Sequence record: NC_070936.1
Reading direction: 5' to 3' (one strand)
Length of the DNA stretch: 64,000 nucleotides
The notes under the pieces were generated by a model that was not told where the DNA came from, made no database searches, and worked only from the letters and a program-made list of their open reading frames with translations. Of the stretch, positions 19,421 through 41,332 are shown piece after piece (the first letter of the stretch is position 1; every line of letters starts with the position of its first letter). The position numbers and the translations under genes are program-made.

Positions 19421-19452
19421 TAGCTACTCTACCCAAACGGGTAGAGTAGCTA
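19421..19452. terminator. bidirectional terminator between convergent genes
   Basis: TAGCTACTCTACCC-AAAC-GGGTAGAGTAGCTA. Confidence 0.85.
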
Positions 19453-19472: not shown

Positions 19473-19661
19473 TTATGACTTTATTTTGAAAACAACTGAA
19501 CCCTTATAGATAGTTCCATCTGGGTGTTCAACATAAGTATATTGAACAGAAGGACTTTCTATATTGTTGGTTGTCAAATCTGGTCTAGAGACACCTTCAT
19601 AGAAAGCTTTGAATGGTATCTGTCCAGTTTGACCTTGTAGAATATCTATCTTCTTGGCCAT
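19473..19661 (-). CDS. 62-aa partial Ig-like repeat protein (chain member D)
   Basis: AAGGT RBS; KKIDILQGQTGQIPFKAFYEG aligns without gaps to repeat starts such as NKLETAVGEQNTLKVRPIYKD. Confidence 0.65.
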   Translation of the reverse strand: MAKKIDILQGQTGQIPFKAFYEGVSRPDLTTNNIESPSVQYTYVEHPDGTIYKGSVVFKIKS

Positions 19662-19685
19662 TACAATATTACCTTATTATAGTTA

Positions 19686-19697
19686 GGACATAGAATC
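19686..19697 (-). promoter_or_regulatory. putative late promoter (GATTCTATGTCC)
   Basis: Identical 12-mer at 39662-39673; both just downstream of a terminator and upstream of a - strand gene; contains TATG, the phiKZ late core. Confidence 0.5.
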
Positions 19698-19713
19698 CTT
19701 TAAACAAAATAAA

Positions 19714-19743
19714 GAGTATCTACCCCTGGTGGGGTAGATACTC
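19714..19743 (-). terminator. intrinsic terminator
   Basis: GAGTATCTACCCC-TGGT-GGGGTAGATACTC; T tract follows on the - strand. Confidence 0.8.
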
Positions 19744-19754
19744 AATGATGAAGT

Positions 19755-21923
19755 TTATAAAATTTCTACTTTAAATCGGTCAGTAGGGATACCTTTACTA
19801 TTAGCTTTTGTTTCTAAATCAACAGAAGCTTTAAGTGCGAAATCTGTTTCATTGTATTTAACATTGAAAGTCAATTCTGCTGTATCTGTGATGACATCTT
19901 TTTCATCAGCAGTCACAGATTTGAATGCCCACTTACCGTCTTCAGTTTGAATAAATTCAAAGTCAGCTTTGATAGCTTCAGCATTATCACAAACTACAGA
20001 AGTTACATTAGCAGTAACATCTTCACCACCTACCTTTATTGTATAAACTAAAGGCGCAACGTCCCAAAGTTCCATTGTGTATTTGGTTGTTAGATCGGTG
20101 ATTCTTGGTTTGGTTGGTGCAGTAACATCAAGCTCTGCGGAGACACCTGTCCAAGACATAGGGAACCCATTATAATCTTCAGTGAGTTCAAACTCTATGC
20201 TGGCTTTGGAGTTCTCTTTATTGGATCTCACCTTACCTTTAAATACCAGACCTGTTTCATCTGTGGCAACAAAGTTATCAATAATGGTAACATCTGTCGG
20301 AGTAGCAGAAGTAATATCAACTTTAATAGCTGATGGTTCTGTTGCACCCAAAGTACGTAATTGAAGGAATCTCAATTCAACATCAGTTTGATCGTAAGGT
20401 TCTAACTTATTAGGAGTTAGTTGTGCAGTAACTGGTGTACCTGGATTACTATACGACTTAACTGGTATTTCAAATAAAGGCTCATCTTTATCTGGATAAC
20501 CCAGAACCATTGTGATATTAAATACACCTTTATTGTAAGAGGTCGTGACAACAACACCATAGTCACCAGGCTCAGCGCCAGGTTGAATATTGTTGCTATA
20601 TCCATTTATGACAGCATTTGGAGCTTTAACCTTAAGGCTCTTGAATACTAATCCAGATACTGGTTGACCAGCGGCATCTTTAACACTGAATGAAATCTCA
20701 TTCCGACCCATTGGGTTGATATCGGAATCCTGAGTTTTCCATTCCACACTGGCTGTTGGTTCAGACATGGAAATGACTTTCTGAACAAACTCCCCAACTT
20801 GTGTTTGATATTTGATATCAACTTGTTGAGTGAGTTCTACATCAGCACCAGTTTTATTTTCTTTAGTGATTTCCCAGGTAATTTCAGTGGCTGTTTTGCC
20901 AACCAACTTAATGATAGACTCGTCAGCAACAGTTACTTCCAAATCTTCATTAGATACTGCAACCCCATCATACTCTACGGACAGTTTAACTGAATGAGTA
21001 GAACCTTGCAGACCTTTTATTTCCTGTGGGATTTCTTTAATGGCAAGACCGCCAATATAAACCGAACCAGGTAAAGTGGTGGTTACTATGTTAACATTCT
21101 CAACAACACCTTCAGTGTCATCACCGATAACTATAGTAACGTCACCAGTGCCAGCCTGAGGCTTACTGTTAAGAACAATAGTTAGTGCATCCACATTGTT
21201 TACGATGCTGTCACCAAATGTGAATGGACCACCATTAGAGGACTCAGAACGCAATTTAAGAGCTTTAGCTGGTTCAGGTAGACCTTTGTACCAAACATTA
21301 AATACGGTGGTGGTAGTGCCTCCTATAGGGGCTTTACACTCGGTAGCTGTGGTTGTTGCTTTAAGAGCTACACCGTCATAAGGTTCGGCGTTAATGGTCC
21401 CTTCAAAAGTTTTAACCGTTTGGTCAGGATCATATTCAGCAGGTAACTTATAAGTCCAGTTTGCTTTGAAAGCTTTGGCTTCAGCAAAGCTAGCATCAGA
21501 CACGATATACCACTTGGTATTATCCCAAGGTCCCAATTGAATATTGGCAGTAGGAGTTAGTTTAACATCTACCAACTGACTAGTGATATCCTGACCATTG
21601 GCCATTACTTTAAATGGCAATGTCGTTCCACTATCCCATACCTTAGAACTAATAGGTGTGTCAACAGTCTCTAGTACCAATTTAGCTTTCTGCTTTAATG
21701 ATAGAGGGACTGTTAACTTGTACTTGTCTTTATATATGAATGTGAGGTTTGGTGTGTGAGTGGTATCCTGGGCAACTTCGCCCAGGAATTTATAGGTAAT
21801 AGAATCAGCGGTCTTACTCTCGATTTCAACTTTAGAAGTATCGTCGAGAGTAATAACCATTTCTGGATCTAAGTTACTCAACACCTCCCCATCAACAGCC
21901 ATTGCGTTTCTAACTGTTGCCAT
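19755..21923 (-). CDS. Ig-like repeat virion/fibre protein (chain member C, 722 aa)
   Basis: Repeats such as KVWDSGTTLPFKVMANGQDIT and ELWDVAPLVYTIKVGGEDVT; TAAGGA RBS. Confidence 0.75.
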   Translation of the reverse strand: MATVRNAMAVDGEVLSNLDPEMVITLDDTSKVEIESKTADSITYKFLGEVAQDTTHTPNLTFIYKDKYKLTVPLSLKQKAKLVLETVDTPISSKVWDSGTTLPFKVMANGQDITSQLVDVKLTPTANIQLGPWDNTKWYIVSDASFAEAKAFKANWTYKLPAEYDPDQTVKTFEGTINAEPYDGVALKATTTATECKAPIGGTTTTVFNVWYKGLPEPAKALKLRSESSNGGPFTFGDSIVNNVDALTIVLNSKPQAGTGDVTIVIGDDTEGVVENVNIVTTTLPGSVYIGGLAIKEIPQEIKGLQGSTHSVKLSVEYDGVAVSNEDLEVTVADESIIKLVGKTATEITWEITKENKTGADVELTQQVDIKYQTQVGEFVQKVISMSEPTASVEWKTQDSDINPMGRNEISFSVKDAAGQPVSGLVFKSLKVKAPNAVINGYSNNIQPGAEPGDYGVVVTTSYNKGVFNITMVLGYPDKDEPLFEIPVKSYSNPGTPVTAQLTPNKLEPYDQTDVELRFLQLRTLGATEPSAIKVDITSATPTDVTIIDNFVATDETGLVFKGKVRSNKENSKASIEFELTEDYNGFPMSWTGVSAELDVTAPTKPRITDLTTKYTMELWDVAPLVYTIKVGGEDVTANVTSVVCDNAEAIKADFEFIQTEDGKWAFKSVTADEKDVITDTAELTFNVKYNETDFALKASVDLETKANSKGIPTDRFKVEIL

Positions 21924-21937
21924 GGGTATTTCTATCC

Positions 21938-24900
21938 TTATTTAGTTGGGTTCTTAACTGCTTGAGTTAGTACGATAGTATCGGTACCTTCACCACTAGT
22001 TTGGAATCCATCGACCATTTCTAATTTTTCATAGAAAGGTACGTGTTGGAAACTAAAGCTAGTATTCGCAGTTTGTTTGACATTCTTAGGATCAACATAA
22101 GTGATTGTCAAACCAACATTGTTTCCAATGTAAGTAACATCGGTATCTTCGGTGAATCTCAGTTTCAAACCATTTTTGGTGATTGAACCAGGAACTATTT
22201 CAATACGCGGATCCGTAGGTTTAGAAATAGTCACTTTAGGATCATTCAATGCAACCTGCTTATCATTATAATAAGCAATTATTTCCATTGGCATTTCGTC
22301 ACCAAGCTTACCGGTAACGCGCCCAGGAACTGTATCTGAAACAATGAATGGTTTATTGGAATCAACCAAGGTCAGTCTGAATCTTGCAGGACCACCATTG
22401 ACGTTAGTAATGATCTCGTTATTAGGAGTGCCTTTCAGTTTGAGGTTAACAATGACTTCTGTATAAGCGACACCAACTTTAGCAAAATCAAATCGCATTG
22501 TGCTTCTGCCTGATGCATTATCATAAGTCATAGCACCACTAGGAGTGCAGTAACCACTACCAACTGGCATACTAACGAAATCTAAAGCCCCTACTGGAAC
22601 GCCTCTCAGCTTACCTGAGAATTGCATACTGGAGAACCCGCCAGAATACATGATCCATTCGCCGCTCTCACCTCTGTAGTTAGGAGGGACTTCTGCGGTC
22701 AATACCAGTTCTTTACCATCATACTCATTAATGGTAAATGGAACTTCAACATTAACTTCTGGCGTATCTGCGGCGTACTTATAAGTATAAGAAACATTTT
22801 GTTTAGTTGTAGGGATAGCCTTATCAGAGATAATCTGATAACCGCCCTTAAGACCATTATGTTTAACCAAACTGGTCTCAACAAAACTAATTGCATTTAC
22901 ACTAGAGGTAACGTCTTTATCACCCAACATGAATTTAAGTGGTGGGTTGGCGGTACTGAACCAAACATCAACTTTAGGTTCCAATACTGTTACAACTAAG
23001 GCACCGGTTAAAGTAACATTAATAGTAGTTTCTGTTTTGAGACCTTTGGAACTGACTTGGACCTTAACAGGAACTACCTGGTCATAAGGAACTTCCTTAT
23101 CAATTTGAACGACCATTGTATCTGCAGTTACTGAAACCTTACTAATGGTATCAGCTGGATCGAAGGACCATGCTACAGAACTATCATCAAACTTAAAGTT
23201 AGTTTCACCATTGGTTAGGGAACCAGTTAAGGTAATCCGATCGCCCTTCTTACCAGAGATATCAGTAGGTGTCAAATCAAGTTTGAAATTACTCGAATCT
23301 ATAACACCATAGATAGGTTCCAATGGTACCTGGTTTTCAGTTGTTCCATCAGATAAGAAGAAGGTGACAAAGCCCTTACCTTCATGCCCACCACCGACCA
23401 CCACCACACTATAAACCCCATCACCGATCTCTTTGAAGTCCTTAGCAGACGCGGGGGCACCACCTGTTGCAATTCCGCCTTTAGATACCACAACACCAGT
23501 AACTGGCTTACCGGTTAGGGTAACTTTGAACTTCATCTCAGTTTCAGCACCTTCAACACCATTGAATTCGGTATCGATTGGTTCAGCAATCAATGTGGCT
23601 TTAGGTATTGCCAATCCATCTGCTATTACTGGTATTCCAGTAACTCCCTTAGCTGTTATCCCACCTCTAACATAGACATTTCCACTTACAGTGGTTGCGG
23701 TGAATTTAATTATTAGATATTTATTGTCGTTGGGATCCACGGAAACAGAGAACTCTTTGGTCGTATCGATACAGTTCTCAGGAACTGGGACCAGTTTACC
23801 AGTGAGTAGTTTCATATCCTCTAACAGCGTTCCGTTATTAGATACTCTACATCTGATAGTATTTTCTATACCTGGTTTAACTTCACCAGGTTGGTATAGT
23901 GTTAGCAAAGGAGCTTCGGTGGAGGTTGTTGGGTTTACCCAGAAATTATTTCTAGTTACACATTTATATTGATCATTCACCCCACCTTCTTTATACAACA
24001 TCGCCCATGGTGAGTAGTACTGATGGTTGGTATCAGTGATATTCAATCTTGGTTTAGTGATTCTGACATATAAGGTGGTATCATCTCCACCTATGTAACT
24101 AAAGGCATTTGCTTTAATGGAAGGGCTACTGATATTATTACCATTATCAAGGAAATAAACTGATAAGTTATAGTCATTTAAAGATATTCTTTCACCATTA
24201 ATATAGACATAAACTTCAGCTGTCCCGGAGCTTCCAACAAATGCACCCAATGCCCCATAAGGTCCACCGACTTTTTCTATGGTTCCATAAAGAGCTAAAT
24301 AGTCTCCATTGGAGAATAGCTTGGCATTTAGATGAACTACATCTATATTTTCATTAGCCCCTGGAGAATCCTTAAGTTTATACCCTATCCCATTAACAGT
24401 AGTAATAGGGTTATATACATCTTTAGACCCGTTAACTACAGTTGCCTTGATAGTAATCGTAAGCTCGGTATTATCTTCGGATGGTGTTAACTTAGTTACT
24501 ATAAATCCTGGATTAGTGGGAAGGATAACTTCTATCCTATCTGCAATTGGTTCTTTCTTATATTTAGGTTTAATTACATAAGTGGTTTCTTTTAGAGGGC
24601 TAGCCCCAATGATTCCATCTGTTTCAATTTCTAGGGCTTTACCACTCCAAGCCGCTATTCGATAAGTACCATAGGCTACTTTAGGTTTCCAGTTGCCACC
24701 AACATTAACTTCAAAAGTAAAGAATGTGGATTTACTAGCTCCCGCATTTGGAGCTGTGTCCACAGTCCATTTAGTTGGGTCTTCTGGGTCGACAATGATA
24801 TATTCATTGGGGATCAGTTTAACATTTCTAATCTCACTGGTTACATCTGTCCCGGCCAGAACGACACTAAATGGTACAGCGTCCAGTTGATCCCAGACTT

Positions 24901-26557
24901 TAACATCAATAGTCTTAGGTGTGATTACAACAAGATCATTACCACTAATAAGTAGCTTCTTGTTATATTTGTAAACACGATTCTCAGGAGCAGGTCCCGT
25001 GATATCCGCAGTTACAAGTATCTCACCATTATTACCATTGGTGATGGCATTGATGACAAAACTACCATCGAGATTTTTAGATGGAGCAGAGGCACTAGTT
25101 AATGGTCCAGTTGCTTTAAAGTTAGAAATAGTGTTGCCGGAGAACTTGTTTTCACCTTGTTCCTTGATACCGATGATGACATAGTTATCACCTTTATTAT
25201 TCAACTTCTCAAATGGCATTGCATAAGAATCATAACTACCTTCTGGAACAGGAATAGAGAGTTCTTGGCAAGCGACCGGAGTGACGCCATAGATAGGACC
25301 GTTGTAGTACCTTGGACAACCCAGCACGCCACTGGCTATAACCAATTTTTGTTCAACACCAGTGGTAGTTATTTCCTGGATATATCTATTTAGTTGATCT
25401 GGGGTTAACCCAGTTATATCAATTGTGGTTATTGTAGTGTTATTAGAAGCCACACGTAATGAGGCAAATCCAGAAATAAATTTAGCACCTTCAGTGATCC
25501 AATAAGACCAATTCACCCCAGCTGCAATGGAAGCTGTAAACATGGCCTTTTGTAGAGAATTGGGAACTAGATCTTTGATCGATGTTAACAGAATGGCTTT
25601 GGGTTCCTGACCAACATCCAATAATGCAACCCCACCATAATCGTAAGTCTGACCAGCTCTACCAAATCTCCATGTGAATCCCAATGATTCGTCAGATGCA
25701 ACTGGACTATCATTAGTTATTACATATCCAATGTACTCTGGTGTAACTTCCGTAATTGAAAATTTAGATGCACCCTTTTGCTTTTTAACTGCTATGTTGA
25801 CTGGACTTATTGTTATACCTTGAGTGTTGAGTGGCGTTATAACCCCACTTAAAGTGATAATGGGATATAATCTACCTTTAGCGTCTTTAGGTCCTTTCGG
25901 GTTACTATCAAACCCGGTTGGGAAAGTCACAAAGAACCCACTCTTAAAAGTCATAAGAATATTAATAGCCGCCCAACCATCACCTTCTTTGGTACTGTCA
26001 TCAGCTTCATTTCTCAATATTCTTATTCTGACAGTTTCACCCAGAGCTTCTGCAGTTGGAGTATAGTAGACTCTGACTGTTAAATTATCAGGGAGTTTCT
26101 CTTGTTTATTAAACTCGGCCTTGCCGTTGAACTCATTAGATCCTGACAGGAACTGAAATTTTGTATTACTTAAAGGCTGACCTTGATATTTGGCTTGAAT
26201 ATCAAAGTAGCTTTGCTGGTTGGGAACACCAGTAATAATTCTACCATTATTGGTAATGATTGTTGCTTCTAACGTACCTTTTGGATACGCCTTTATATTG
26301 ACCTTACTCTCTGCTTCCAGGGAGTAGGTCTGTCCTAAGTCTTCGACGTCAAACTTGAATACTGCGTCGACCAAGGTATCTTTATCTTGGTCGGCATTAA
26401 TTACTGTGAAAGTATCGTTATCATTAGCTTTGAAGAAGGGGACCGGAGTCCCCCCTTTTACATCAACTTCTTTTAACTTGATATTCTCAGTAATGTCAGT
26501 ACCAGTTTGGACGCTTCTAACCCTGAATGGAACTACAGCTGACTGTTTGTTATCCAC
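21938..26557 (-). CDS. large Ig-like repeat virion/fibre protein (chain member B, 1539 aa)
   Basis: VKVWDQLDAVPFSVVLAGTDVT-type repeats; GTG start with AAGGA RBS. Confidence 0.75.
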   Translation of the reverse strand: MDNKQSAVVPFRVRSVQTGTDITENIKLKEVDVKGGTPVPFFKANDNDTFTVINADQDKDTLVDAVFKFDVEDLGQTYSLEAESKVNIKAYPKGTLEATIITNNGRIITGVPNQQSYFDIQAKYQGQPLSNTKFQFLSGSNEFNGKAEFNKQEKLPDNLTVRVYYTPTAEALGETVRIRILRNEADDSTKEGDGWAAINILMTFKSGFFVTFPTGFDSNPKGPKDAKGRLYPIITLSGVITPLNTQGITISPVNIAVKKQKGASKFSITEVTPEYIGYVITNDSPVASDESLGFTWRFGRAGQTYDYGGVALLDVGQEPKAILLTSIKDLVPNSLQKAMFTASIAAGVNWSYWITEGAKFISGFASLRVASNNTTITTIDITGLTPDQLNRYIQEITTTGVEQKLVIASGVLGCPRYYNGPIYGVTPVACQELSIPVPEGSYDSYAMPFEKLNNKGDNYVIIGIKEQGENKFSGNTISNFKATGPLTSASAPSKNLDGSFVINAITNGNNGEILVTADITGPAPENRVYKYNKKLLISGNDLVVITPKTIDVKVWDQLDAVPFSVVLAGTDVTSEIRNVKLIPNEYIIVDPEDPTKWTVDTAPNAGASKSTFFTFEVNVGGNWKPKVAYGTYRIAAWSGKALEIETDGIIGASPLKETTYVIKPKYKKEPIADRIEVILPTNPGFIVTKLTPSEDNTELTITIKATVVNGSKDVYNPITTVNGIGYKLKDSPGANENIDVVHLNAKLFSNGDYLALYGTIEKVGGPYGALGAFVGSSGTAEVYVYINGERISLNDYNLSVYFLDNGNNISSPSIKANAFSYIGGDDTTLYVRITKPRLNITDTNHQYYSPWAMLYKEGGVNDQYKCVTRNNFWVNPTTSTEAPLLTLYQPGEVKPGIENTIRCRVSNNGTLLEDMKLLTGKLVPVPENCIDTTKEFSVSVDPNDNKYLIIKFTATTVSGNVYVRGGITAKGVTGIPVIADGLAIPKATLIAEPIDTEFNGVEGAETEMKFKVTLTGKPVTGVVVSKGGIATGGAPASAKDFKEIGDGVYSVVVVGGGHEGKGFVTFFLSDGTTENQVPLEPIYGVIDSSNFKLDLTPTDISGKKGDRITLTGSLTNGETNFKFDDSSVAWSFDPADTISKVSVTADTMVVQIDKEVPYDQVVPVKVQVSSKGLKTETTINVTLTGALVVTVLEPKVDVWFSTANPPLKFMLGDKDVTSSVNAISFVETSLVKHNGLKGGYQIISDKAIPTTKQNVSYTYKYAADTPEVNVEVPFTINEYDGKELVLTAEVPPNYRGESGEWIMYSGGFSSMQFSGKLRGVPVGALDFVSMPVGSGYCTPSGAMTYDNASGRSTMRFDFAKVGVAYTEVIVNLKLKGTPNNEIITNVNGGPARFRLTLVDSNKPFIVSDTVPGRVTGKLGDEMPMEIIAYYNDKQVALNDPKVTISKPTDPRIEIVPGSITKNGLKLRFTEDTDVTYIGNNVGLTITYVDPKNVKQTANTSFSFQHVPFYEKLEMVDGFQTSGEGTDTIVLTQAVKNPTK

Positions 26558-26578
26558 GGTTATTGGTCCTTATCAGTA

Positions 26579-29500
26579 TTAACGAGGAGAAATGACTTTG
26601 AATGGTGCAGCGTAAGACTTGCTGTATTCAACGTCTATCTGTGTGATATCGGTCACATATGGCGTAGTCGGAGAAGCTGACTGCGTTAACGTGATGTCTA
26701 CAATATATTCACTTCTTCCTTTATAAGTGAACTTCAACTTGAACTTATGAATAACTTCTTCAGTAGAGTCGTTAGTGAATTTGTATCCGATAGTCTTATC
26801 ACTGAGAGTCCCGATGGTAACTGCTGGGTAATCAACGATTTGAATAATCAAATTCTCATCGGTGTTAGCCAATGCGGTCGAACCAAGGAGCACACTCTGA
26901 ATAAGAGTAGGTAACTCATAGTAGTTACCAGTTCCAGTAGTTTGGAAACCACTAGCCGGAGTGAGTTCCGTAGGTAGGATTTCAACCTTAGGTCTCAGGT
27001 CAATATAGTCAGAACCAATGTTACCGTTACCAGTATCATGGACAGACTTCAATCTGATCTTCAGGTCTCCATTACCAACATTCCCACCTGTTACTTTAAT
27101 TACTAAAGTCCCATCGCTACCTGGGCTCATGTTACCAAAGGTAATCAATCCAGCAGGAATAGAAATACTGCTTGACTTATCGAAAGTAACATTACCAACT
27201 AAAGGCTCGCCAGAGTAATCGCCTTTGATAGTGATGAATCCTTGTTCACCTGTCATCAGGATTACGTCATCAGCCGTTGCATTAATCTCTTTTCCGTTAT
27301 AACCATAAACAGTGAAAGTAACTTCTTGTTTGATGGTAAATGTAACGTTGTCCAGAGTAATATCAACTTCGAAGGTAGGCATTACTTTAGTAGTCTGAAC
27401 ATCAGCGTGACTAATTACCCATCCTTTATCTTTGATGCTCACGTATGAGTTATCAGAGATTCTCACGGCAGAAATCTGATCAGTTACATCATTACCTTTC
27501 CAATCCAATTTGAATGGCAGAGGTCCGCTCTCATTAATATGAGCAGTGATTTCTGATGTCAGATTAGTTACAGTTGGTTTAGGAACCGTAGATACCTGAG
27601 TAACTTTGAATGGTATTTTCAACTGACGGTCTGGCGGAATGTTAGTATCTTTATTCCAAGCCGCTACCACATCTGAGGTAAGTTCCCCAACATCAATGTC
27701 ATTAGCGAACTTAAACTGGAAGTATCCACCTGCGATGTAAGTTGTCGTCACAACGTTAGGTGTAAATACTGCCCTGTTAAAGTCTGTGGATAGGATACGA
27801 GCTTCATCAATGCCTTTCCTGTACTTGACATCCATTCTCATCACAGGCCCGCCAAACTGACCAGTAAACTCTTCTGGGTCGGCAGAGATCAGATAATAGC
27901 CATCGACATAGTACGTTTGAACTGGAACTTTCACATAAGTGAAATCCACGCCTTCCACTGCATCAGGGAGATACATTCTGGATTTAAGACCAACACAGAG
28001 GTAACCTTCTTGAGGTTCCTTCATATCAGTCGCTAGCGCTTGCCAGTTAAAGTAAATGTTTTTGGAGTTATTATCAGGACCTTGGTTATAGATGTTTTCA
28101 GCAAACCCTGGGAGCTTAGAACGAGCGGAGTCTATTTCAAATAGGCTATAATCGCTAATAGCTACTTTACGATATTCGCCTGAAACAGTACCGCGGAATA
28201 TAGCATTCGTTTGACCCATTATCCCGTTATTAAACTGGCTAGGGTTATTAAACTTAAAGCTCAGGGCTTGACCATCATACCCTTCGATGTTGAATACAAC
28301 ATCCTGTTCAATTTCCCAAACACGAGGACCCTGAACGACCGTAACAATAAATGTACCAGTCTTGGTAGTTGCTTCAGGTTCACCATCAATAACAGTATAG
28401 CCATCAGTGAGTTTAGGACCCATCTCCAACCAATCTTTATCTTTATCAGCTGCTTTGATATTAGTAACTGAAGAAGTATCGGCCGGATAATCCACACCAT
28501 CAATAGCTAGTTTAAATGGCAGACCTGTGTTCTTTTTCCAAACGCTCGTGTTAACTTCTTGAACATCTGTAACTGTAAGAACTGGATCTGTCGCACCTTC
28601 TTTAGCTTTGAAGATGATAGGTTGATCGTAACTAAAGGTATACTCTTTATTGTTGTTAGGGTTTTTGAATCTGATATTAAAAGTGAAGTAACTTGTAACA
28701 TCAGTAGCGCCAGGTTTAACAGCAGCTGGACTAATTTTGTAAGACTTAGCGGTCCAGTTGAATCGATTAGTCCCCTGAACATTAGATGCCCCAAAGAGTG
28801 TTGCGATACCTAGGTCGTGTGTTAGACCAACCGAGATAACTTCATTGGTTAGGTTGAGATTAACAGCAAGAGCACCCCAAACTAAATCGCACGGGACATC
28901 GACCACTGTCGTACTTCCGGCAGGGACAATGATAGGCTCAGGTACGAATCCTTCCCTGAAGGTAATTTTATCTTCGAACATATTCCAGATAACTGGCATG
29001 TTATCGAAGTTTTTACCAGGAGTGCCGGCAGGGTAACCGTTAGGTCCATTAGCCTCAGTACCATTATACTGTAATGGGACTTTACCTTTGTATTTACCCA
29101 ACTTGTCAGGTATCACCCTAACACTCACCTCATTGGCATTACTACCACCGCCAGAAGTCCAATGTATGGCTGTTGGATCTTCCGACTCAATACGGTTGAT
29201 TGTTGAATATCCAGACCGGTTTGTTCCAATAGGGTATGTTTTATTTTTCAACATTGCCCTAAAGAAGAAAGTGTAGAAGTTATTAGTGAAAGGTATGTTG
29301 ATAACGAAGCCATCACCTTCTTCCGTAATAACTGGTGCACTAACACCATTCTTGTTTACCGGTTCGCCCCAGAACTCAATCCCATCCCAAGCTGAGATAT
29401 TAACAGTTATCTTACCAGTAAGAACAACATTACCAGTAGATGCAGGAGTCGAGTATGTGAATTCTACTTCTACCGTCTTAGGTGTTGGGTCCGCATTTAT

Positions 29501-32500
29501 ACACTGTACAGTTGCACTTGGACCAGCTTCAAAGTAATTTGAACTGATCGCAGTGATACTACATTGTGTAGTAATATCGGTTTCACCACTAAAGACTTTG
29601 AATGGAGTGAATTTACCCCAAATATCGACATCCACAGGGTCGGTATTAGGTTCTAATCTCGGACCTTGGAAAGCCTTAAGTTGAACCTTACCACGTTGGT
29701 GCAGGTCATTGGTTCCATCATAACCCACGACATCCCAGACAAAGTTAAATACAGCAAAGAACGAATTAAGCCCTTTGTATTTAACCACCAGTTCATCTCC
29801 ATCAGGTTCGACAGAAAGAACTTCGAAGAAGGCGCTATTCTGAGTTTGTTCTTGATTCAATGTCAGAGCCGTAGTAGGTAAACCGCGGTTAGTCATTTTG
29901 AATCTCAACTCACCTTCTTTATCTTTGGTAAGTTCAAATGGATTCGGCGCGCCGGTACCTTGGATCCATCCAGCATGAGTAGGTCTAGAAGCTACTAGTG
30001 TTGTTAATTCTACATCAGGTATCTGTATCGTGGACCCTCTAAATGGAACCTCAATAACCCATGAAGTTCTAACATTATGGTTTCCGGTATTCCCGATGTA
30101 GTTATCAATACACCACATCCAGTCCTTGTTAGGATTTTCATCATCAGGAATGATGAGAATGCCTTGGGCGTCAGCATCCAATGTTTCCATACTCACTGGA
30201 GTACATTGAGTAGTTAGATCGGTACCGCCAACCATCACTTTAAAGATCTGAGGACCTCTAACCCTGTTGAATGGTTCAACACTAACTCTGATTGGTGTGA
30301 TTACCGGATAATCCGCAGGGACGACAATCTCAAATGGCTGAGTGTATTCACCAGTATGGGTTGTTCCAGTATTTGGGTCTGTATAACTCAAGGAAACTTT
30401 AATTTCCCGTTTACCCAATTCAGCATCGATAGGTGCGATGACCTCATACTGATACTGAGTTTGGTTAGATCCAGTGATCTTAATAATATCATCAGGATCA
30501 AGAGTTATTTTCAAGTCAGGGTTATCAAGTAGTATATTACGACCTCTGAGAGTGACTCTTAAAGGCATGTTACCTTTATCACCATTCCCGCCCTTAAGAC
30601 CAGCATTCCAACCAGTTACCAATAATGGAGGTTGTTTGAAATCCGCACCAATAACCAGACTACACCAATCCAGGAACTCAACACCAGGTTTAGCTCCACC
30701 AGGTCTTCTCAAGATGAGTTTGATATCACCTTTAAATTCCTTAGTAGGAGTTACACTATATCTGGCTCGCGCCTCAGACCCACCACCGATTGGACCAGTG
30801 AACTCAATATCCATCGCGTCACGGAAATCAGTTTCCAAATAGTCAATTATGTCAGTGTTGTTAAAGTTAGGGATTAACTTGTAAACAGTCTGCATATCAA
30901 CAGTTGTTACATCTCCCACTTCCATTACTAGAGGGTAGGTGTTATCAGGATAATGTTCAGGTGGATTTCTGTGCATCCAGAAGGACTCTAAAGTTCTCTG
31001 GTTCCAGGCTGCAATGTTGAACACCACATCAGCTTCACCTTTCCATGTCCAGTTACGGTAGATACCGTTATAGATCATTTTCAGTGTGAGTGACTTATTG
31101 GTCTCATCTGCTTTCACTACCGTAAAGCTACGGAGAGAAACAGTGATGTATCCATTAGGTTGTTCTTCATCTAATTCACAGTTCATCCAACCACTTTCAG
31201 CAGGAGCTGGAAGACTAGATGCTGTCAGTGAGACATCTCCACAAGTCGCCGATCCGATACCGAGGGATTGGGTATCAAACATCTTACATGCAACTGGAGA
31301 ACGAGGAACAACTACTACTGGTGCGGAAGTATACAGTTCAGGTATTTCTACTCTTCTGCTGTAATTATTTCCACCATAAGTATATGTGATGTTAATGAAG
31401 TCAGAAACTGTGATTTCACGTCCTGGGGCCACAACGCCTGCAAGAGAGTAATTGAATGATTCAGATTCCCAACTACCGATGCTGAGAACACCAGCGTTAG
31501 GAGAAGCACCTTCACCTTTCTCTACAGTTACCCGCAGACTACCATTAGCCATTTCCTGTTTAGCATCGATAGGAATCCCACCAAACAGAATCTGGAGTTT
31601 GTACTCTCCAGTGTCTCCGTCCTTACCAGTCAGCAGGTTATCACGATCACCGATCTCAACACCCAACTCACCCATAACTTTAGTCGGAACTTTACCAGTC
31701 CAAACGTCATAAGGAGCTGGATCTGTACCAGCAGCAGGAGACCAGAACACCAGGTCCATTTCCCCAAGCCCGGCTTCAACACCTTCAAAGGTCAATACGA
31801 AATCAACTCCATCCATCGAGCTACTAACGTATTTAACAGATTTAGGGAAAGTACTCAATTCAGGTTTGAATGTCGCACTTGCACCTACTTCCTTATCTTT
31901 GTAAATTGGGCGAACCTTCAGGGTATTTTGTTCACCAACAGCTGTTTCCAATTTATTAGGCGTGACGGTACATTTGAATCTAGTTGTATCCTGAGCACCT
32001 TGGATTCGGAATGTCGCATCAAACTCAAGTGACTGAACTTCTGGAACTTCATCTACCTTATACAGAACCTGCATCTTGATAGTCTTATCGCTCTGAACTT
32101 TCTCAGCGCCGATAATTTCCCAGCCACGTGGTGCGATGAACTCGACCCATTGGTTGTCCGGTTCGTTGGTCTTATAACCCTGAACAGTATTTAAAGGGTT
32201 ATCGCCCATTTTAATACCTTGAGTAAATGACCCACGATCCCAAATCTTACCGTTGATTGGATCGTTGTTCGTGATCTCTACTTTACCCATCTGGATACTA
32301 ACCTGGGTAGAAATCGTTCCTTCTTTAGGCGCAGGAGCACCAACTTCATAGGTGACTTTAATATCTTCAGGATAAACAGTCAAGGCTTCACTGACGTTAG
32401 AACGAATGGCCTGAATAACAACACCATTGCTAACTCCACCCACGATACGAATCGAGTGTGCTTTGCCATTATCTACCAGTTCATATTTCAGCCCTGGTGT

Positions 32501-35500
32501 ATTACCAGGAATTCCATATTCCCCATATTTAAGGGCCAGTACGATGGTTGCTGTTTCCATCCAAGGAATCGTAATCGCTGGGGTTTTGGATTCAACAGTA
32601 AAGACTTCATCAGAAGACTGAGTGATAACTTTAACTACGGCAACTGCATAGTCATCATTGACAACTGGCGGATTGGTAGCATTCTCTCTCACGAATACTA
32701 ATCTGAGAGTGTCTTCTGCTTGACCCAACAATGTGTAAGGTACATCACCATCTGGAGTGATCTCACCCAGTACGATGTTTTTAGGTATAGTACTCTTACC
32801 TAAATCAATACTTACATTCTTGGCAACATCACCGGCATACTTAAAGCGGAACTTCATTGTTCCAGGTGTACCAGCTTTACCTTCAACTTCTTCTGGACCT
32901 TCAGTGATAACGAATTTCTTACCGTCATATTTGGCGATATTGAAATCGGTTTCAGTATCCATCTGGTAGGTATTCCCACCCATGGAGTATTGAGCAGAAA
33001 GTCTCAGAGTGGTAGTAATGGAAGTAGATTGGCTACCGCCAGTAACGTACCATTTATTTGGTTCAGTGAAAGTGATATACGGGTTAGTTCCACGAGGAGT
33101 CAGACTTTCGATTGGAACAGGTCGACCTTGATCATCAACCAAAGTAATTCCAACGACGCCGCGATCCCATACGTTAACGTTAAATGAAGGGTTAGCTCCA
33201 ATTCTAACATCAGGAATATGGATGACTACCGGTACGGTATTTTCATTGGTCCAGGTTTTTCCATTAGGGTCAACGTACTCGACATTGATTTTGAAATCAT
33301 AGTCGTAGTCTTCGCCTTTCTCCCCACCTTTAGCAAGTTTAACAGTCAAGGACTCGTCATTGATCTTAACAAGTTCTACTGGCTCGCCATCACCTGAAGT
33401 GGCAGTGAGTTTTAACTTAGGATCATTCAGGGTTAATGGAATACCATCCCAGTTATAGACTAACTCGATAGTTGCTTCGGCATTCCAGATGCCTTTAACA
33501 GAAGGAGTGATCTTAACTAGGTTCAGTTCATGGGGCCATGCAATCTCAGTCGGAATATCAGCCTGGATCGTTCTACCACTTGGTGTGTGGCGATAGATCA
33601 GGGTCATTAAGTAATCACCACCACGAGTGGTTTCGTACCCAATAACTACACCTTCACCATCCACGTTAGAACTTACACCCATGATGAAAGTTTCTGGGAT
33701 AGTGGAAGCAGCTTTATCCACAACTACATCAGCGTTAGCCGGTTTACCTTTATAAACAAAGTTACCCGTTATTGTACCATTAGTTCTGGAATCTGCTTTG
33801 ATAGACTTAGGTTCCCAATCACCGCCGAAAGTGATCTGGTCCCAAGGCTCCAAATTAAAGACAACTTCAGTAATGAACTTGCGATCTTTAGCTTTGCCTA
33901 CGGTCCATTTAATTTCTAACGGAATCGTAATGGTGGTTGCTTCTTTCTCAGCCCAAATCACTTCCCAGTTAAGTTTATTGAAAGCAATATACTCATTATC
34001 CTGGATAGATTTGACGCTAGTAATCGCACCAGTCCAGTTGGTATTACCAGCCATGAGAGTGAAAGGCAATAGTCCAGTATCCCAAATAGCTGCATCGATA
34101 GGTGCGGCTGGGGTACCTTCTAAACGCATTTCTGGATATACAGTGAAGACAGGTAAAGTGAACTTAACGTTAGTTTGTTTACCGTCTCTTGGGTCTGTAT
34201 AGATGTACTCTAATTCCAAACCAGATTGACGAGTCTCACCGATGTATTCCCAAACGTTGTCAACAACCTCGACACCATTGTCTTTAACGTCAACGATACG
34301 GACGTTAGATTTGTCAGTACGCTTATACGTTAAGTTAGGATCGGTCAGTGGAACGACTTTACCAGCAAAGGTCAGAGTGATCTTAGCTAATGCTGAAGAA
34401 CCACCTACTTCAACTGTGGTTTCTTTATCGTAATCCTTAAGTACCAGTACACGAGACTGTTTAACGTCAGTGCTAACGTGAACAAGTGCGATATCTTCAG
34501 GTTTAGGATCTTCGATACCAGGGCGTTGAATATAAACTTTACCAGGCTCAGTAGTAGGTTGAAGTTTACTGTAGTTGGCACGAATAACATTTCGTTCTTC
34601 TATATAAACGAAAGAGTTGAAAGTAATCCCTGCTGGGGTTACTAACTTATCTTTCATTATTTCTGCTGTGGCGGTAATGTCTTCTGACAAGTGGTATACT
34701 TGGAATTCAAAGTAACCTGTTTCATCAGACAGACCGTCGATCAGTGCAGAAGAAGGAACGGCTACAGTTTTGGTGTTAATCCCAGGTTCTGTTGTACCAG
34801 GATCTTGTTCCCAAGCATTAACATTGAAAGTTTGATCGTAAGTAAACTGACGCCAAACACCATCAATAGTGTAACGGAACTTAAATGGAACTGTGGTGCT
34901 TTCTGCCGGAGCAGGAACATCTGGAGCATTACCAACGAACCATTGATCCGCATTACCTTTCTTAGGAATGATGAAACCTTTCTCATCTTCAAAAGTATAA
35001 TCACTAATTTTCTTAGTGACATCAACGCCGTTCACAATCAGTTTAAATGGATAGTCACCAAACTGATACTTATTAACCACGAGAGGGTTAGAGAGAACAG
35101 GAACCAGTTCAACTGTGGAGACCTGCGCTACAATTACACGGACCTTACGAGTGATGACGTATCTTACACCAGTTGGCGCAATCCAACGGAATACTTGATC
35201 ATAGTCATCTTCAATTTCTTCGCCGGGTTTGTTGGCGTCTTTGATGATGGTGTAATTAACACCTAACTGATCAACTGAATTATATTCGATCAGTTCTTTC
35301 TCACCTTTCTTACCTGTGCGGATATCAAGATCGGTAGGAGAAATAGGTTCATCATTATAAAAAGCACCAACAGTCAAAAGACCTTTATCGCCTTTATGAC
35401 CACGGATAACAGCTGGGAAACTACGAATCTCAAACTTAGGACCGGTATCTGGACGAGTAAGAACTACGTTCACATACGCCGGAGCTTTAGAAGTAATATC

Positions 35501-36706
35501 ACCTTCGTTATATACAAACTCAGCGGTATAGAGCCCACCGACTTGTTCAACGGTGTTCGGGAAGTTAGTGCTTAAATGACCTTCATAGATCATCGCGTCA
35601 TTTTCATCCCAGGTAGTAAACTTCATTGCACCGAAGTTACCTTGCTGGAGTAACGCAGATGGAGGAGCACTAATTCTTACCTTATTGCCTTTATAGAAAG
35701 CAGTGATCTTAACCTGTACATCTGAACCTGATGGCGCGGTAACGGTTTCTGGATCAATTACGAAAGTAAGATCGAAACTGTTATCCTTTTCGATAACCAC
35801 ATTGATTCTGAACGTTTTCTTAACAGGTCGACCTTGCCACATATAAGTGACACGCACGATGATCTCATCACGGACTTCTTTTTCAGAAGAACCATAAATG
35901 GTTTCACCAATGATGAAGTTTCCGTCTTCAGAACGTTTAGGAATGGTGTAACCAGAACCAGTACTGATTTCGATCAAAGCTTCATGTGTGATGTCAATAG
36001 TGGTGTTGAACCAATAGGTATTTGGAATACTGAAGTCTTTACCACGCTGGGTCGTAATGGACTCAGGAAGGTTAGAAGTAATTCCAGGAACATTGGCTTC
36101 ATCCAGAACTAATTCATAAATGAATAGTGGATAGGTTCCAGTACCAAATGAAGCATCAGTGATTTTAACTGTACCTGATTCGAGAGTATCGTAATCAATG
36201 AAAGTTAAAGATTCACGAGAGGTAACGTATTCATTAAAGAACAAATCACCAAAGGCAGCCATTGGACCACTGATGGTTTTTGCTTCTTCTTGAGAAAGCA
36301 GAACACCATAGTTATTAAGCCACTTACACCACAGTAAACCGTGATCTACTTTGTTGGCTTTAACGTAAGCTTTCAAGTTATCCAGGTCTTCGATCTCGAT
36401 CAATGGAACGGCGAAGTCTTCCAGGATATCTTTCATTTGTACACGAGTGATGTCGACGTCAACACGTGCAAAACCGGTTTTGCGCGCTGTAAAGCAAACG
36501 CGAGTAATACCATCAGGGAAAGCAACTGGGTTCTCAATAACTAAGTCACCAGCAACCAAACCTGTGTAACGTTCTTTAGCTAACGCCAACTCATCTTCAG
36601 GTCCTTCAACCTCAAGACGTTTTATACGTTCTTTCAAGAAACGTTCTACTGGTGTGTATAACGGATCGTTAATACACTTTTTGTTAATCTTAATTTGCTC
36701 TGCCAT
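26579..36706 (-). CDS. giant Ig-like repeat virion/fibre protein (chain member A, 3375 aa)
   Basis: Uninterrupted 10.1-kb ORF; alternating repeats (W..G.LPF.L..G..D.T and P..+.G..G..G.+...YKG); distinct N-terminal domain of about 190 aa. Confidence 0.8.
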   Translation of the reverse strand: MAEQIKINKKCINDPLYTPVERFLKERIKRLEVEGPEDELALAKERYTGLVAGDLVIENPVAFPDGITRVCFTARKTGFARVDVDITRVQMKDILEDFAVPLIEIEDLDNLKAYVKANKVDHGLLWCKWLNNYGVLLSQEEAKTISGPMAAFGDLFFNEYVTSRESLTFIDYDTLESGTVKITDASFGTGTYPLFIYELVLDEANVPGITSNLPESITTQRGKDFSIPNTYWFNTTIDITHEALIEISTGSGYTIPKRSEDGNFIIGETIYGSSEKEVRDEIIVRVTYMWQGRPVKKTFRINVVIEKDNSFDLTFVIDPETVTAPSGSDVQVKITAFYKGNKVRISAPPSALLQQGNFGAMKFTTWDENDAMIYEGHLSTNFPNTVEQVGGLYTAEFVYNEGDITSKAPAYVNVVLTRPDTGPKFEIRSFPAVIRGHKGDKGLLTVGAFYNDEPISPTDLDIRTGKKGEKELIEYNSVDQLGVNYTIIKDANKPGEEIEDDYDQVFRWIAPTGVRYVITRKVRVIVAQVSTVELVPVLSNPLVVNKYQFGDYPFKLIVNGVDVTKKISDYTFEDEKGFIIPKKGNADQWFVGNAPDVPAPAESTTVPFKFRYTIDGVWRQFTYDQTFNVNAWEQDPGTTEPGINTKTVAVPSSALIDGLSDETGYFEFQVYHLSEDITATAEIMKDKLVTPAGITFNSFVYIEERNVIRANYSKLQPTTEPGKVYIQRPGIEDPKPEDIALVHVSTDVKQSRVLVLKDYDKETTVEVGGSSALAKITLTFAGKVVPLTDPNLTYKRTDKSNVRIVDVKDNGVEVVDNVWEYIGETRQSGLELEYIYTDPRDGKQTNVKFTLPVFTVYPEMRLEGTPAAPIDAAIWDTGLLPFTLMAGNTNWTGAITSVKSIQDNEYIAFNKLNWEVIWAEKEATTITIPLEIKWTVGKAKDRKFITEVVFNLEPWDQITFGGDWEPKSIKADSRTNGTITGNFVYKGKPANADVVVDKAASTIPETFIMGVSSNVDGEGVVIGYETTRGGDYLMTLIYRHTPSGRTIQADIPTEIAWPHELNLVKITPSVKGIWNAEATIELVYNWDGIPLTLNDPKLKLTATSGDGEPVELVKINDESLTVKLAKGGEKGEDYDYDFKINVEYVDPNGKTWTNENTVPVVIHIPDVRIGANPSFNVNVWDRGVVGITLVDDQGRPVPIESLTPRGTNPYITFTEPNKWYVTGGSQSTSITTTLRLSAQYSMGGNTYQMDTETDFNIAKYDGKKFVITEGPEEVEGKAGTPGTMKFRFKYAGDVAKNVSIDLGKSTIPKNIVLGEITPDGDVPYTLLGQAEDTLRLVFVRENATNPPVVNDDYAVAVVKVITQSSDEVFTVESKTPAITIPWMETATIVLALKYGEYGIPGNTPGLKYELVDNGKAHSIRIVGGVSNGVVIQAIRSNVSEALTVYPEDIKVTYEVGAPAPKEGTISTQVSIQMGKVEITNNDPINGKIWDRGSFTQGIKMGDNPLNTVQGYKTNEPDNQWVEFIAPRGWEIIGAEKVQSDKTIKMQVLYKVDEVPEVQSLEFDATFRIQGAQDTTRFKCTVTPNKLETAVGEQNTLKVRPIYKDKEVGASATFKPELSTFPKSVKYVSSSMDGVDFVLTFEGVEAGLGEMDLVFWSPAAGTDPAPYDVWTGKVPTKVMGELGVEIGDRDNLLTGKDGDTGEYKLQILFGGIPIDAKQEMANGSLRVTVEKGEGASPNAGVLSIGSWESESFNYSLAGVVAPGREITVSDFINITYTYGGNNYSRRVEIPELYTSAPVVVVPRSPVACKMFDTQSLGIGSATCGDVSLTASSLPAPAESGWMNCELDEEQPNGYITVSLRSFTVVKADETNKSLTLKMIYNGIYRNWTWKGEADVVFNIAAWNQRTLESFWMHRNPPEHYPDNTYPLVMEVGDVTTVDMQTVYKLIPNFNNTDIIDYLETDFRDAMDIEFTGPIGGGSEARARYSVTPTKEFKGDIKLILRRPGGAKPGVEFLDWCSLVIGADFKQPPLLVTGWNAGLKGGNGDKGNMPLRVTLRGRNILLDNPDLKITLDPDDIIKITGSNQTQYQYEVIAPIDAELGKREIKVSLSYTDPNTGTTHTGEYTQPFEIVVPADYPVITPIRVSVEPFNRVRGPQIFKVMVGGTDLTTQCTPVSMETLDADAQGILIIPDDENPNKDWMWCIDNYIGNTGNHNVRTSWVIEVPFRGSTIQIPDVELTTLVASRPTHAGWIQGTGAPNPFELTKDKEGELRFKMTNRGLPTTALTLNQEQTQNSAFFEVLSVEPDGDELVVKYKGLNSFFAVFNFVWDVVGYDGTNDLHQRGKVQLKAFQGPRLEPNTDPVDVDIWGKFTPFKVFSGETDITTQCSITAISSNYFEAGPSATVQCINADPTPKTVEVEFTYSTPASTGNVVLTGKITVNISAWDGIEFWGEPVNKNGVSAPVITEEGDGFVINIPFTNNFYTFFFRAMLKNKTYPIGTNRSGYSTINRIESEDPTAIHWTSGGGSNANEVSVRVIPDKLGKYKGKVPLQYNGTEANGPNGYPAGTPGKNFDNMPVIWNMFEDKITFREGFVPEPIIVPAGSTTVVDVPCDLVWGALAVNLNLTNEVISVGLTHDLGIATLFGASNVQGTNRFNWTAKSYKISPAAVKPGATDVTSYFTFNIRFKNPNNNKEYTFSYDQPIIFKAKEGATDPVLTVTDVQEVNTSVWKKNTGLPFKLAIDGVDYPADTSSVTNIKAADKDKDWLEMGPKLTDGYTVIDGEPEATTKTGTFIVTVVQGPRVWEIEQDVVFNIEGYDGQALSFKFNNPSQFNNGIMGQTNAIFRGTVSGEYRKVAISDYSLFEIDSARSKLPGFAENIYNQGPDNNSKNIYFNWQALATDMKEPQEGYLCVGLKSRMYLPDAVEGVDFTYVKVPVQTYYVDGYYLISADPEEFTGQFGGPVMRMDVKYRKGIDEARILSTDFNRAVFTPNVVTTTYIAGGYFQFKFANDIDVGELTSDVVAAWNKDTNIPPDRQLKIPFKVTQVSTVPKPTVTNLTSEITAHINESGPLPFKLDWKGNDVTDQISAVRISDNSYVSIKDKGWVISHADVQTTKVMPTFEVDITLDNVTFTIKQEVTFTVYGYNGKEINATADDVILMTGEQGFITIKGDYSGEPLVGNVTFDKSSSISIPAGLITFGNMSPGSDGTLVIKVTGGNVGNGDLKIRLKSVHDTGNGNIGSDYIDLRPKVEILPTELTPASGFQTTGTGNYYELPTLIQSVLLGSTALANTDENLIIQIVDYPAVTIGTLSDKTIGYKFTNDSTEEVIHKFKLKFTYKGRSEYIVDITLTQSASPTTPYVTDITQIDVEYSKSYAAPFKVISPR

Positions 36707-36783
36707 CAGCAGGGTCCTCTTTTATATGAAAAATCTATACTTTACATTTTAGAAGCAAATGATTCTAAGCCTCATACCATAAT

Positions 36784-36815
36784 AATGAGAGCCCAGGTTA
36801 CCCCAGACTCTCATT
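36784..36815 (-). terminator. hairpin / probable terminator
   Basis: AATGAGAG..CAGG-TTA-CCCCAGACTCTCATT stem between the 938-aa and 3375-aa genes. Confidence 0.6.
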
Positions 36816-36819
36816 CATT

Positions 36820-39714: not shown

Positions 39715-40452
39715 TTAAGGTTCTATAACTAACGTGGTTCTGACACTACGTGAGCTGCATTTAACATCGGCATTACTAAACCATACTTCATAGTTAGTGC
39801 TGCTTTTGTTAGCAACATATGTGGTAAAGGTCACTGTTTTCTCATCAATGATCTTAGCGTCTCTGATCCAGTTAAATGTATTGGATCTCCCAGCAGCCTC
39901 ACTATACGTATAGTCTCGTTGTACAACCAACTTGTCTGATGTTATACCATCCTCAGGAAGTTTGACTGTCCACACCCCCAGGTTTCTTTCTTTGTCATAG
40001 ACAACTGAAACTTCGCCTGGGCCAACAGGAATATAATCGAATTCTGTTCTAGACGTATACTCAACACCGTCAGCTAATATAACTATATTAGTGGCCGCGC
40101 TATCTGGCTTATTGACGATATTTATATGAGCACGCAGACTGGTTTCTCCAAAGAGACCGTTTTCTCTCTTCCTTATTTTTAACGGACCAGTACCGCCCCA
40201 GATACCGGGCTCAAATCCTTTTACTTCCCACTCATTAATATAGGTAGTATTCCCTTTCTCATCAATGACTCTGAATGTTCCAAGTACTGAAGATTTGACC
40301 ATGTTATCCCATTCGGTAACTAGTTGGTTACCTCCTGTATACCCATAGCGCTGTTCAAATAAGATTGCAGGTCTACCCATATAACCATTGACCGCTCCAA
40401 ATGAAAATAATAACTGTTTTAAGTCAACAATGTGACCATAGGATCCGAACAT
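39715..40452 (-). CDS. beta-rich hypothetical protein, probable structural protein
   Basis: 245-aa ORF; true start may be ATG 40380 (MGRPAIL) because 40452 abuts a terminator with no RBS. Confidence 0.65.
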   Translation of the reverse strand: MFGSYGHIVDLKQLLFSFGAVNGYMGRPAILFEQRYGYTGGNQLVTEWDNMVKSSVLGTFRVIDEKGNTTYINEWEVKGFEPGIWGGTGPLKIRKRENGLFGETSLRAHINIVNKPDSAATNIVILADGVEYTSRTEFDYIPVGPGEVSVVYDKERNLGVWTVKLPEDGITSDKLVVQRDYTYSEAAGRSNTFNWIRDAKIIDEKTVTFTTYVANKSSTNYEVWFSNADVKCSSRSVRTTLVIEP

Positions 40453-40494: not shown

Positions 40495-40563
40495 TTAAAG
40501 TTCGAAGTCATTGAATGCGCCTTCTGCAACATTGGAATCGATTTGACCTACCAGGTAAGAACT
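40495..40563 (-). repeat. duplicated nrdB 3' end (22 codons plus stop)
   Basis: [22 protein letters not shown] is collinear with nrd[23 protein letters not shown] at 41344-41412. Confidence 0.9.
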
Positions 40564-41292: not shown

Positions 41293-41304
41293 GAATACCT
41301 CATG

Positions 41305-41332
41305 CCCCATTTACCCAATTGGGTAAATGGGG
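41305..41332 (-). promoter_or_regulatory. hairpin between nrdB and the HNH gene
   Basis: Perfect palindrome CCCCATTTACCC-AATT-GGGTAAATGGGG, 3 nt from the HNH RBS. Confidence 0.6.

Follow-up and report, generated by a model that had tools for sequence, protein, structure and literature searches.

Bacterial pili are a textbook example of assembly by strand complementation between incomplete immunoglobulin-like (Ig-like) folds. In chaperone-usher pili (type 1 and P pili), Ig-like subunits that miss their C-terminal G strand receive it from the N-terminal extension of a neighbour, and the product is a non-covalent head-to-tail polymer with type-specific, ordered joining and a terminating subunit. 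In the type V pili of Bacteroidia (FimA/Mfa1), one or more C-terminal strands fill the groove of the next subunit's N-terminal placeholder strand, the pilins being lipoprotein precursors that lose the placeholder by proteolysis and assemble into homopolymers. Strands also swap in the dimers of classical cadherins, where the N-terminal A strand docks in its own or in the partner's domain. The long tail fibre of phage T4 (gp34-gp35-gp36-gp37) is made of trimeric β-structured rods that depend on chaperones and whose joints are not split Ig domains. Here we analyse a chain of genes, A to D, on the minus strand of a 64,000-nucleotide (nt) stretch of sequence record NC_070936.1 (hereafter the window), which belongs to Klebsiella phage N1M2, a 253-kb jumbo myovirus (100% identity; record coordinate = window coordinate + 124000). 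These genes encode giant proteins of tandem Ig-like repeats, and the boundaries between them fall inside domains. Such conserved in-domain cuts strongly suggest that the pieces rejoin end to end into one very long modular fibre.

Three types of junction recur across the relatives of N1M2, and we refer to them as connectors T1 (the B/C boundary), T2 (C/D, that is C to the tip protein) and T3 (A/B). In every type the C-terminus of the upstream protein is a conserved tail that contains strand A of an Ig-like domain, and the downstream protein begins with a head, which is that domain without its strand A. Gene A (26579..36706; 3375 amino acids, aa) encodes a conserved N-terminal anchor region, ~30 tandem Ig-like domains (19 domain hits using two profiles), a T1 module that is left uncut (aa 3245-3342; 26681..26974) and, past the last complete domain, a T3 tail (aa 3343-3375; 26582..26680) that holds, from the next domain, strands A and A' together with a copy of strand B. 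Gene B (21938..26557; 1539 aa, GTG start) continues with the T3 head as its first domain (26294..26557; E 3e-12), which starts at strand B, followed by tandem Ig-like domains and a T1 tail in its last ~30 aa (21941..22030) with strand A, a 10-aa insertion loop and a strand B copy of the first domain of the next protein. Gene C (19755..21923; 722 aa) opens with the T1 head (aa 1-78; 21690..21923), which aligns from profile position 26, has seven Ig-like domains, and closes with the T2 tail (aa 706-722; 19758..19808), a conserved extension past the last complete domain that corresponds to strand A of the first domain of the next protein. Gene D (19473..19661; 62 aa) is a broken tip-protein gene that keeps the start of a T2 head and the C-terminal end.

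A reading made earlier from the letters alone (the sequence-only reading) had described a four-gene chain of Ig-like repeat proteins split within domains. The protein termini, gene coordinates and ribosome-binding sites that it quoted are all exact, and the internal copies to which it likened the termini lie at A 3044-3075, A 3247-3310 and A 1574-1604. It was also right that each downstream gene (B, C and D) has a ribosome-binding site of its own, of AAGG(A) type and 5-10 nt ahead of the start. D, which it counted as the fourth member of the chain, turned out to be the deletion remnant of a 718-aa tip gene (see below).

To compare the junctions we used 13 loci, namely nine annotated phage loci and four assembly contigs reached via their proteins. 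Besides N1M2 the phages are Pseudomonas phage OBP, Edwardsiella phage pEt-SU, Serratia phages Yubaba and Sureiya, Erwinia phage AH04, Kosakonia phage Kc263, Pantoea phage Survivor and Shewanella phage SXP01. The T1 boundary, a ~30-aa tail followed by a ~78-aa head domain, occurs at 14 adjacent gene boundaries and the T2 boundary at 12 (10 in the nine phage records and two in the assembly contigs); the T3 boundary is present in N1M2, Yubaba, Sureiya and SXP01 and in the four contigs. The break points are thus conserved in related phages, and across genera. An exhaustive search with C 1-220 over 1.84 billion representative proteins returned 64 matches, in 47 of which the T1 head sits at residue 1-6 of the protein itself, while five of the 64 carry it uncut at the A-type site. 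Heads are found almost only at N-termini and tails only at C-termini, so that the connector motifs are specific to protein ends and not generic to the repeats. Moreover, every head type is accompanied by an upstream-encoded tail of the same type in all 13 loci, and head-to-tail docking would predict just such constant co-occurrence by type.

The chain is confined to jumbo phages of the OBP/pEt-SU/N1M2 group. A word-indexed protein search found only two proteins, whether C was used by itself or as a 24-sequence profile; a scan of IMG/VR returned only OBP, pEt-SU and one new 271-kb contig, a metagenome scan gave three weak, unrelated matches and a genome scan gave none. One of the assembly contigs (GCA_007314255.1, an assembly of Salmonella enterica Saintpaul) derives over its whole 267347 bp from an SXP01-like jumbo phage with the same chain, and could reflect a carrier state, pseudolysogeny or contamination.

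At the level of fold, the description of these products as Ig-like repeat proteins is correct. AlphaFold2 (AF2) models, built as single chains and read out by DSSP and the predicted local distance difference test (pLDDT), turned both the last 449 aa of A (mean pLDDT 88, from an alignment of 11 homologues) and the whole of C (mean pLDDT 85, from 23 relatives) into strings of β-sandwich domains of ~95-100 aa each. Foldseek matched these models to tandem cadherin, Ig and RTX-adhesin-extender structures in the PDB (E ~1e-11), to Ig-like proteins from further jumbo phages (among them the 'hairy' phages Y3, JA11 and Atu_ph07) and, in the case of C, to the proteins of relatives that correspond to the upstream neighbour U (see below). 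By contrast, hidden Markov models (HMMs) of Pfam detected no family at E<=0.01 in A, B, C, D or U, including no Big_1, Big_2 or cadherin match, nor did those of PHROGs at the same threshold in these five proteins and a nearby 245-aa open reading frame (ORF), where no tail-fibre, tail-spike or fibre-chaperone match emerged. Queried with the sequences of C, of U and of residues 1-600 of A, the PDB likewise gave no meaningful relative. As modelled, the A-D proteins therefore represent a divergent lineage of tandem Ig-like repeat proteins, in which AF2 and Foldseek see the fold and the curated Pfam HMMs are silent.

Where within the domains the genes are cut was determined with a domain profile of 91 positions, built from the modelled domain II of A and iterated over all relatives (181 domain hits). 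The 166 hits that lie away from either protein terminus begin at a median position of 4, and among the 167 hits that are not N-terminal, 130 have their start within the first six positions. By comparison, all five T3 heads (B of N1M2, Yubaba and Sureiya, and g2 and g3 of SXP01) begin at profile position 12, from protein residue 2 (E ~1e-12), and all nine T1 heads detected begin at positions 18-26. Mapping of DSSP strands onto the sequence located the T3 cut more precisely: in the uncut equivalent within C, strand A occupies residues 84-88, A' 91-93 and B 104-108, and the tail of A, which aligns to C 84-108 and to uncut domains in OBP_206 and pEt-SU gp133, holds all three strands, while protein B begins in the loop just ahead of strand B. 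For T1, internal paralogues of the head domain do not have the 10-aa insertion and the head begins at strand B; the tail therefore consists of strand A, the insertion loop and a copy of strand B, and that of B can be aligned with 11 other tails as well as with the module that A keeps uncut. T2 heads, whose starts were placed by pairwise homology to the modelled domain III of A since an iterated domain-III profile lost its first-strand columns, align to that domain from just past its strand A, which amounts to a clean cut between A and A'. The T2 tail corresponds to this strand A, without duplication, and the internal copy that the sequence-only reading gave for the C/D junction, at A 1574-1604, lies precisely where a complete domain has ended and the next profile hit has yet to begin. 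Profile coordinates and strand mapping thus bear out the claim that the breaks lie within Ig-like domains, as well as the claim that a strand occurs in both of the proteins that meet at A/B and at B/C: it is strand B, with an overlap of ~10-13 residues at every T1 and T3 junction.

The same sites can be cut in one phage and uncut in another. The A/B site is uncut in OBP_206, pEt-SU gp133 (5119 aa) and Survivor g1 (5094 aa), and the T1 module, which is uncut in A proteins of the N1M2 type (aa ~3245-3342), is split at the orthologous place in OBP (207/206), AH04 and Kc263. In A this T1 site lies 110 aa upstream of the A/B site, and the model runs at a pLDDT of 90-95 straight across the point at which relatives are cut. 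That one and the same module works as a single chain or as two is hard to understand unless the halves come together. It also means that the alternative named by the sequence-only reading, repeated fission of an ancestral gene, is true as well, as the A/B site and the T1 site upstream of it are each cut in some relatives and uncut in others.

Additional support for an interaction comes from the tails. In the model of C the last complete domain ends at residue 705 and is followed by the 17-residue T2 tail, which has no secondary structure and along which pLDDT falls from 92 to 67 and 45. Yet conservation is highest in this tail, where the commonest residue at a position has an average share of 0.67 (n = 34 distinct tails), compared to 0.38-0.40 for the preceding 37 positions. 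The corresponding values for T1 tails are 0.52 (n = 37 tails) and 0.21-0.32 for the preceding 40 residues. The T3 tail of A is intermediate in structure, with two short strands by DSSP and a pLDDT of 74-81 as compared to >90 upstream. Unstructured in the monomer model in the case of T2, and better conserved than what precedes them in T2 and T1, the tails look like docking segments that would fold upon binding. Overall identity between N1M2 and Yubaba decreases from A (68%) to B (49%) and C (33%), with peaks at the junctions (86% in the last 50 aa of A, 80% in the first 50 aa of B and 62% in the first 50 aa of C), and DNA identity to Yubaba of >80% is kept only at the A/B junction. The first ~300 aa of A, the presumed anchor (attachment) region (35807..36706), are the most conserved part of the locus (100/94/93% identity to Yubaba). 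Judged from sequence comparison, this profile has the pattern expected of a fibre in which the proximal anchor and the joints are conserved and the distal parts vary.

How does this arrangement compare to the described systems? Akin to chaperone-usher pili, an Ig-like domain that is one strand short would be completed by a neighbour. However, the missing strand is here the N-terminal strand A and the candidate donor a C-terminal tail, the subunits have 700-5000 aa with dozens of complete domains, and assembly would be cytoplasmic and viral. Neither a chaperone nor an usher was found among A-D and U (Pfam) or the neighbouring phage genes, and the N-termini do not resemble signal peptides. Type V pili are closer in polarity and provide the closest analogy for the strand that is present on both sides at T1 and T3, but no type V pilin was matched by sequence in Pfam or the PDB, and the heads begin at the methionine directly with a strand, with no protease site. 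The connector system belongs to neither pilus family, given the different strand and donor polarity (in the case of chaperone-usher pili) and the lack of a chaperone, usher, signal peptide, protease site and homology. The strand swap of cadherins differs in being symmetrical between identical domains, as opposed to a tail-to-head chain. With the T4 long tail fibre and other multi-protein phage fibres the locus shares side-by-side genes, a putative end-to-end fibre, and a conserved proximal and a variable distal part. RTX adhesin extenders, intimin/invasin and the Ig-like proteins of hairy phages have the fold and the beads-on-a-string layout in common with A-C (Foldseek E 1e-10 to 1e-18), but this similarity is at the level of fold only, and those proteins are single polypeptides for which no domains split at gene boundaries have been described. 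The sequence-only reading knew of no such description for a phage fibre, and our full-text literature searches found none either, for phage fibres or for jumbo phages; papers on N1M2, Kc263 and ZPAH34, the phiKZ atlas and a jumbo-phage comparison hold nothing on these proteins.

We propose that the giant Ig-like-repeat proteins encoded here form a modular chain in which they are joined end to end and non-covalently. The N-terminus of A would anchor the chain; each tail would dock in trans into the first domain of the next protein, supplying the strand A that this domain lacks and so completing the β-sandwich; and the proteins would be joined by connector type into a thin fibre of ~50 domains, with a conserved proximal part and a fast-evolving distal part that is probably adhesive and binds surfaces. 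We give this reading as a whole a probability of about 0.55. The operon layout speaks for it, since A, B and C are only 14-21 nt apart and a strong hairpin occurs only ahead of the tip gene. At ~100 aa per domain, A, B and C together have ~50 domains. If each of them spans ~4 nm, the extended chain would reach ~200 nm and be longer than the tail of N1M2, for which the N1M2 paper gives 158 nm.

Several points weigh against this proposal. (i) The N1M2 paper saw no tail fibres, although a fibre of this kind would be thin enough to be missed in negative stain, and the genes that neighbour the locus are nucleotide-metabolism and small early-type genes rather than a tail module; the presence of A, B and C in the virion is something that we infer. 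(ii) The contact between tail and head is deduced from sequence comparison and from single-chain models, in which tails and heads stand as separate pieces or in their natural sequences. AF2 folds the first domain of C at a pLDDT of 78-90 without the upstream tail, so that the head may be stable by itself. (iii) The similarity between the strand copies of tail and head is only slightly greater for adjacent than for shuffled pairs (12.7 and 11.3, p ~0.035, with lineages that are not independent), and the duplication of a strand at T1 and T3 goes beyond what simple complementation explains. (iv) Several genomes have two or three T1 heads, which means that the order of the chain is not uniquely set.

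The duplicated strand could be accommodated by an elaboration of the proposal that we regard as possible but doubtful, in which the N-terminal strand B copy of the head is a placeholder that the hairpin of the tail displaces, in a donor-strand exchange that needs no chaperone, in which the swap, duplication or loss of genes would re-programme the fibre, and in which proteins with a T2 connector at both ends self-polymerise on the phage particle in the manner of pilins. Such a T2-to-T2 protein of ~225 aa is present in OBP, SXP01, pEt-SU, AH04 and Kc263 (in the coordinates of the loci, L003 23971-24663, L005 29414-30085, L008 23799-24488, L007 21208-21882 and, for SXP01, L004 25038-25706). In pEt-SU, Kc263 and SXP01 it ends the chain, and still no part of it is as conserved as the tail region (74-79%, compared to 45-59% for most of the rest, apart from one block of 70%), which hints at self-polymerisation.

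Alternatively, the proteins might join head to tail without strand insertion, through pairing of the strand copies, addition at a sheet edge (β-sheet augmentation) or a small adaptor fold. The strand B copy conserved on both sides at T1 and T3 would fit such a joint, as would the N-terminal strand that AF2 leaves in place in the first domain of C and the small two-strand element that the T3 tail of A forms on its own. We nevertheless consider it unlikely: T2 has no duplicated strand and its head clearly begins past strand A, and the uncut versions of T1 and T3 have a single strand copy within an ordinary, continuous domain. A further view, that the boundaries do no more than record repeated fission, with each protein acting alone (through separate attachment or as an adhesin, for example) and the terminal motifs conserved simply as parts of domains, draws on the interchange of cut and uncut states at two sites, on the viability of N1M2 with a broken tip gene and on the N1M2 paper having seen no tail fibres. 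It strikes us as quite improbable, because a tail that is unstructured alone would decay without a partner, and the tails are instead what is best conserved. In addition, the anchor region is confined to A-type proteins and one paralogue, leaving B and C with no evident means of attachment of their own. Nor do the head and tail motifs turn up at ordinary internal domain boundaries, as opposed to the protein ends, and none of the 13 loci has a head type that lacks its matching tail.

That the stops are artefactual or bypassed, by sequencing error, programmed readthrough or frameshift, so that a single polypeptide of ~5600 aa results, has a next to negligible chance of being correct. A and B of N1M2 are in the same frame, as this explanation would have it, but the 21-nt A/B spacer (26558..26578; AAGGA, then GTG) brings three in-frame stops within four codons, the stop of A included, and the frame relation of the neighbouring genes at the same junction is 0, 1 or 2 depending on the relative. 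Readthrough and frameshift are excluded by these stops and varying frames, together with the ribosome-binding site and start codon of every downstream gene. Sequencing error at the junctions, which the sequence-only reading had named as a condition that would overturn it, is excluded too: an independently assembled metagenome contig, 96-98% identical (L015), has the same boundaries, with the same 14-nt B/C gap and an A/B gap of about the same size, and the varying frames as well as the recurrence of the boundaries in at least 13 independent genomes and assemblies agree with this. The gene boundaries are neither errors nor chance.

The proposed fibre would be assembled by rules that can be read from the connectors. 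A chain comprises between two and six genes. In the 13 loci the C-terminal connector of A-type proteins is T1 or T3 (one representative protein, P0065, ends in T2), middle proteins run from T3 to T1, T1 to T1 or T1 to T2, and tip proteins start with a T1 or T2 head but lack a tail. SXP01 carries a duplicated B-type gene (g2 and g3), both copies of which keep both connectors, so that a T1 tail adjoins a T3 head; the contig from the Salmonella assembly apparently shows the same duplication, the start of the second copy being mis-called. This juxtaposition contradicts the earlier suggestion that assembly simply follows gene order, and implies pairing by connector type, with alternative chains possible. 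In the SXP01 record, the 1519-aa duplicate is unannotated (L004 15425-19984) and the gene after it is annotated 21 nt too late (L004 20001).

At the distal end, the metagenome contig L015, which is the closest relative and whose C protein is 96% identical to that of N1M2, has a 718-aa gene at the position of D; D derives from it by one in-frame internal deletion with both ends kept. The tip protein of Yubaba has 491 aa. From its sequence, N1M2 thus probably has no functional tip protein. About 200 aa of the anchor region of A recur at the N-terminus of a 1035-aa protein of Yubaba (E ~1e-24), and the 245-aa ORF of N1M2 mentioned above (39715..40452, minus strand) is a remnant that matches only the C-terminal quarter of that protein. 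N1M2 grows on its host with both genes broken, which suggests that on this host it can do without at least the tip protein and the anchor-paralogue protein.

If confirmed, strand complementation would explain how phages come by fibres far longer than one gene product and why giant genes are repeatedly cut and re-fused at fixed points. The three connector types would amount to a readable grammar that predicts partner proteins, and they would be a natural source of orthogonal, non-covalent docking pairs of peptide and domain for protein engineering. For annotation, dozens of 'hypothetical proteins' of OBP-like jumbo phages (OBP_203-208 carry no other label) turn into a single interpretable system, and several gene starts are corrected. 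In RefSeq, the start of N1M2 gp161 (B) is 201 codons too short, leaving 600 nt non-coding (window 25955-26557). The GTG start at 26557 is backed by the conservation of the junction and by the N-termini of the Yubaba and Sureiya proteins, which are 68% identical.

The remaining elements of the locus concern its expression and surroundings. The 14-nt B/C spacer (21924..21937) contains AAGGA. In the 93-nt gap between C and D, a terminator-like hairpin of 13 pairs with a T run (19714..19743, minus strand) is followed by a promoter-like site (19676-19704), and a bidirectional terminator-like hairpin after D (19421..19452) closes the operon. The tip genes of relatives are preceded by similarly long gaps of 60-146 nt; the 60-nt gap of AH04, the only one of these whose full sequence was inspected, also shows a hairpin. 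Upstream of A, gene U (36820..39636, minus strand; 938 aa) is kept in all relatives and has some Ig-like similarity, and no recognised connector was seen in it. The spacer between U and A (window 36707-36819) is of similar size in all relatives (112-126 nt) and its 5' end, the part inspected, includes an element that is rich in G/C and might form a hairpin; U may constitute a transcription unit of its own. The 245-aa remnant ORF is adjoined by an ORF for an HNH endonuclease (40495-41310), and in one relative (L012 4823-6970) a ribonucleotide reductase small-subunit gene upstream of the chain is interrupted by an HNH endonuclease gene.

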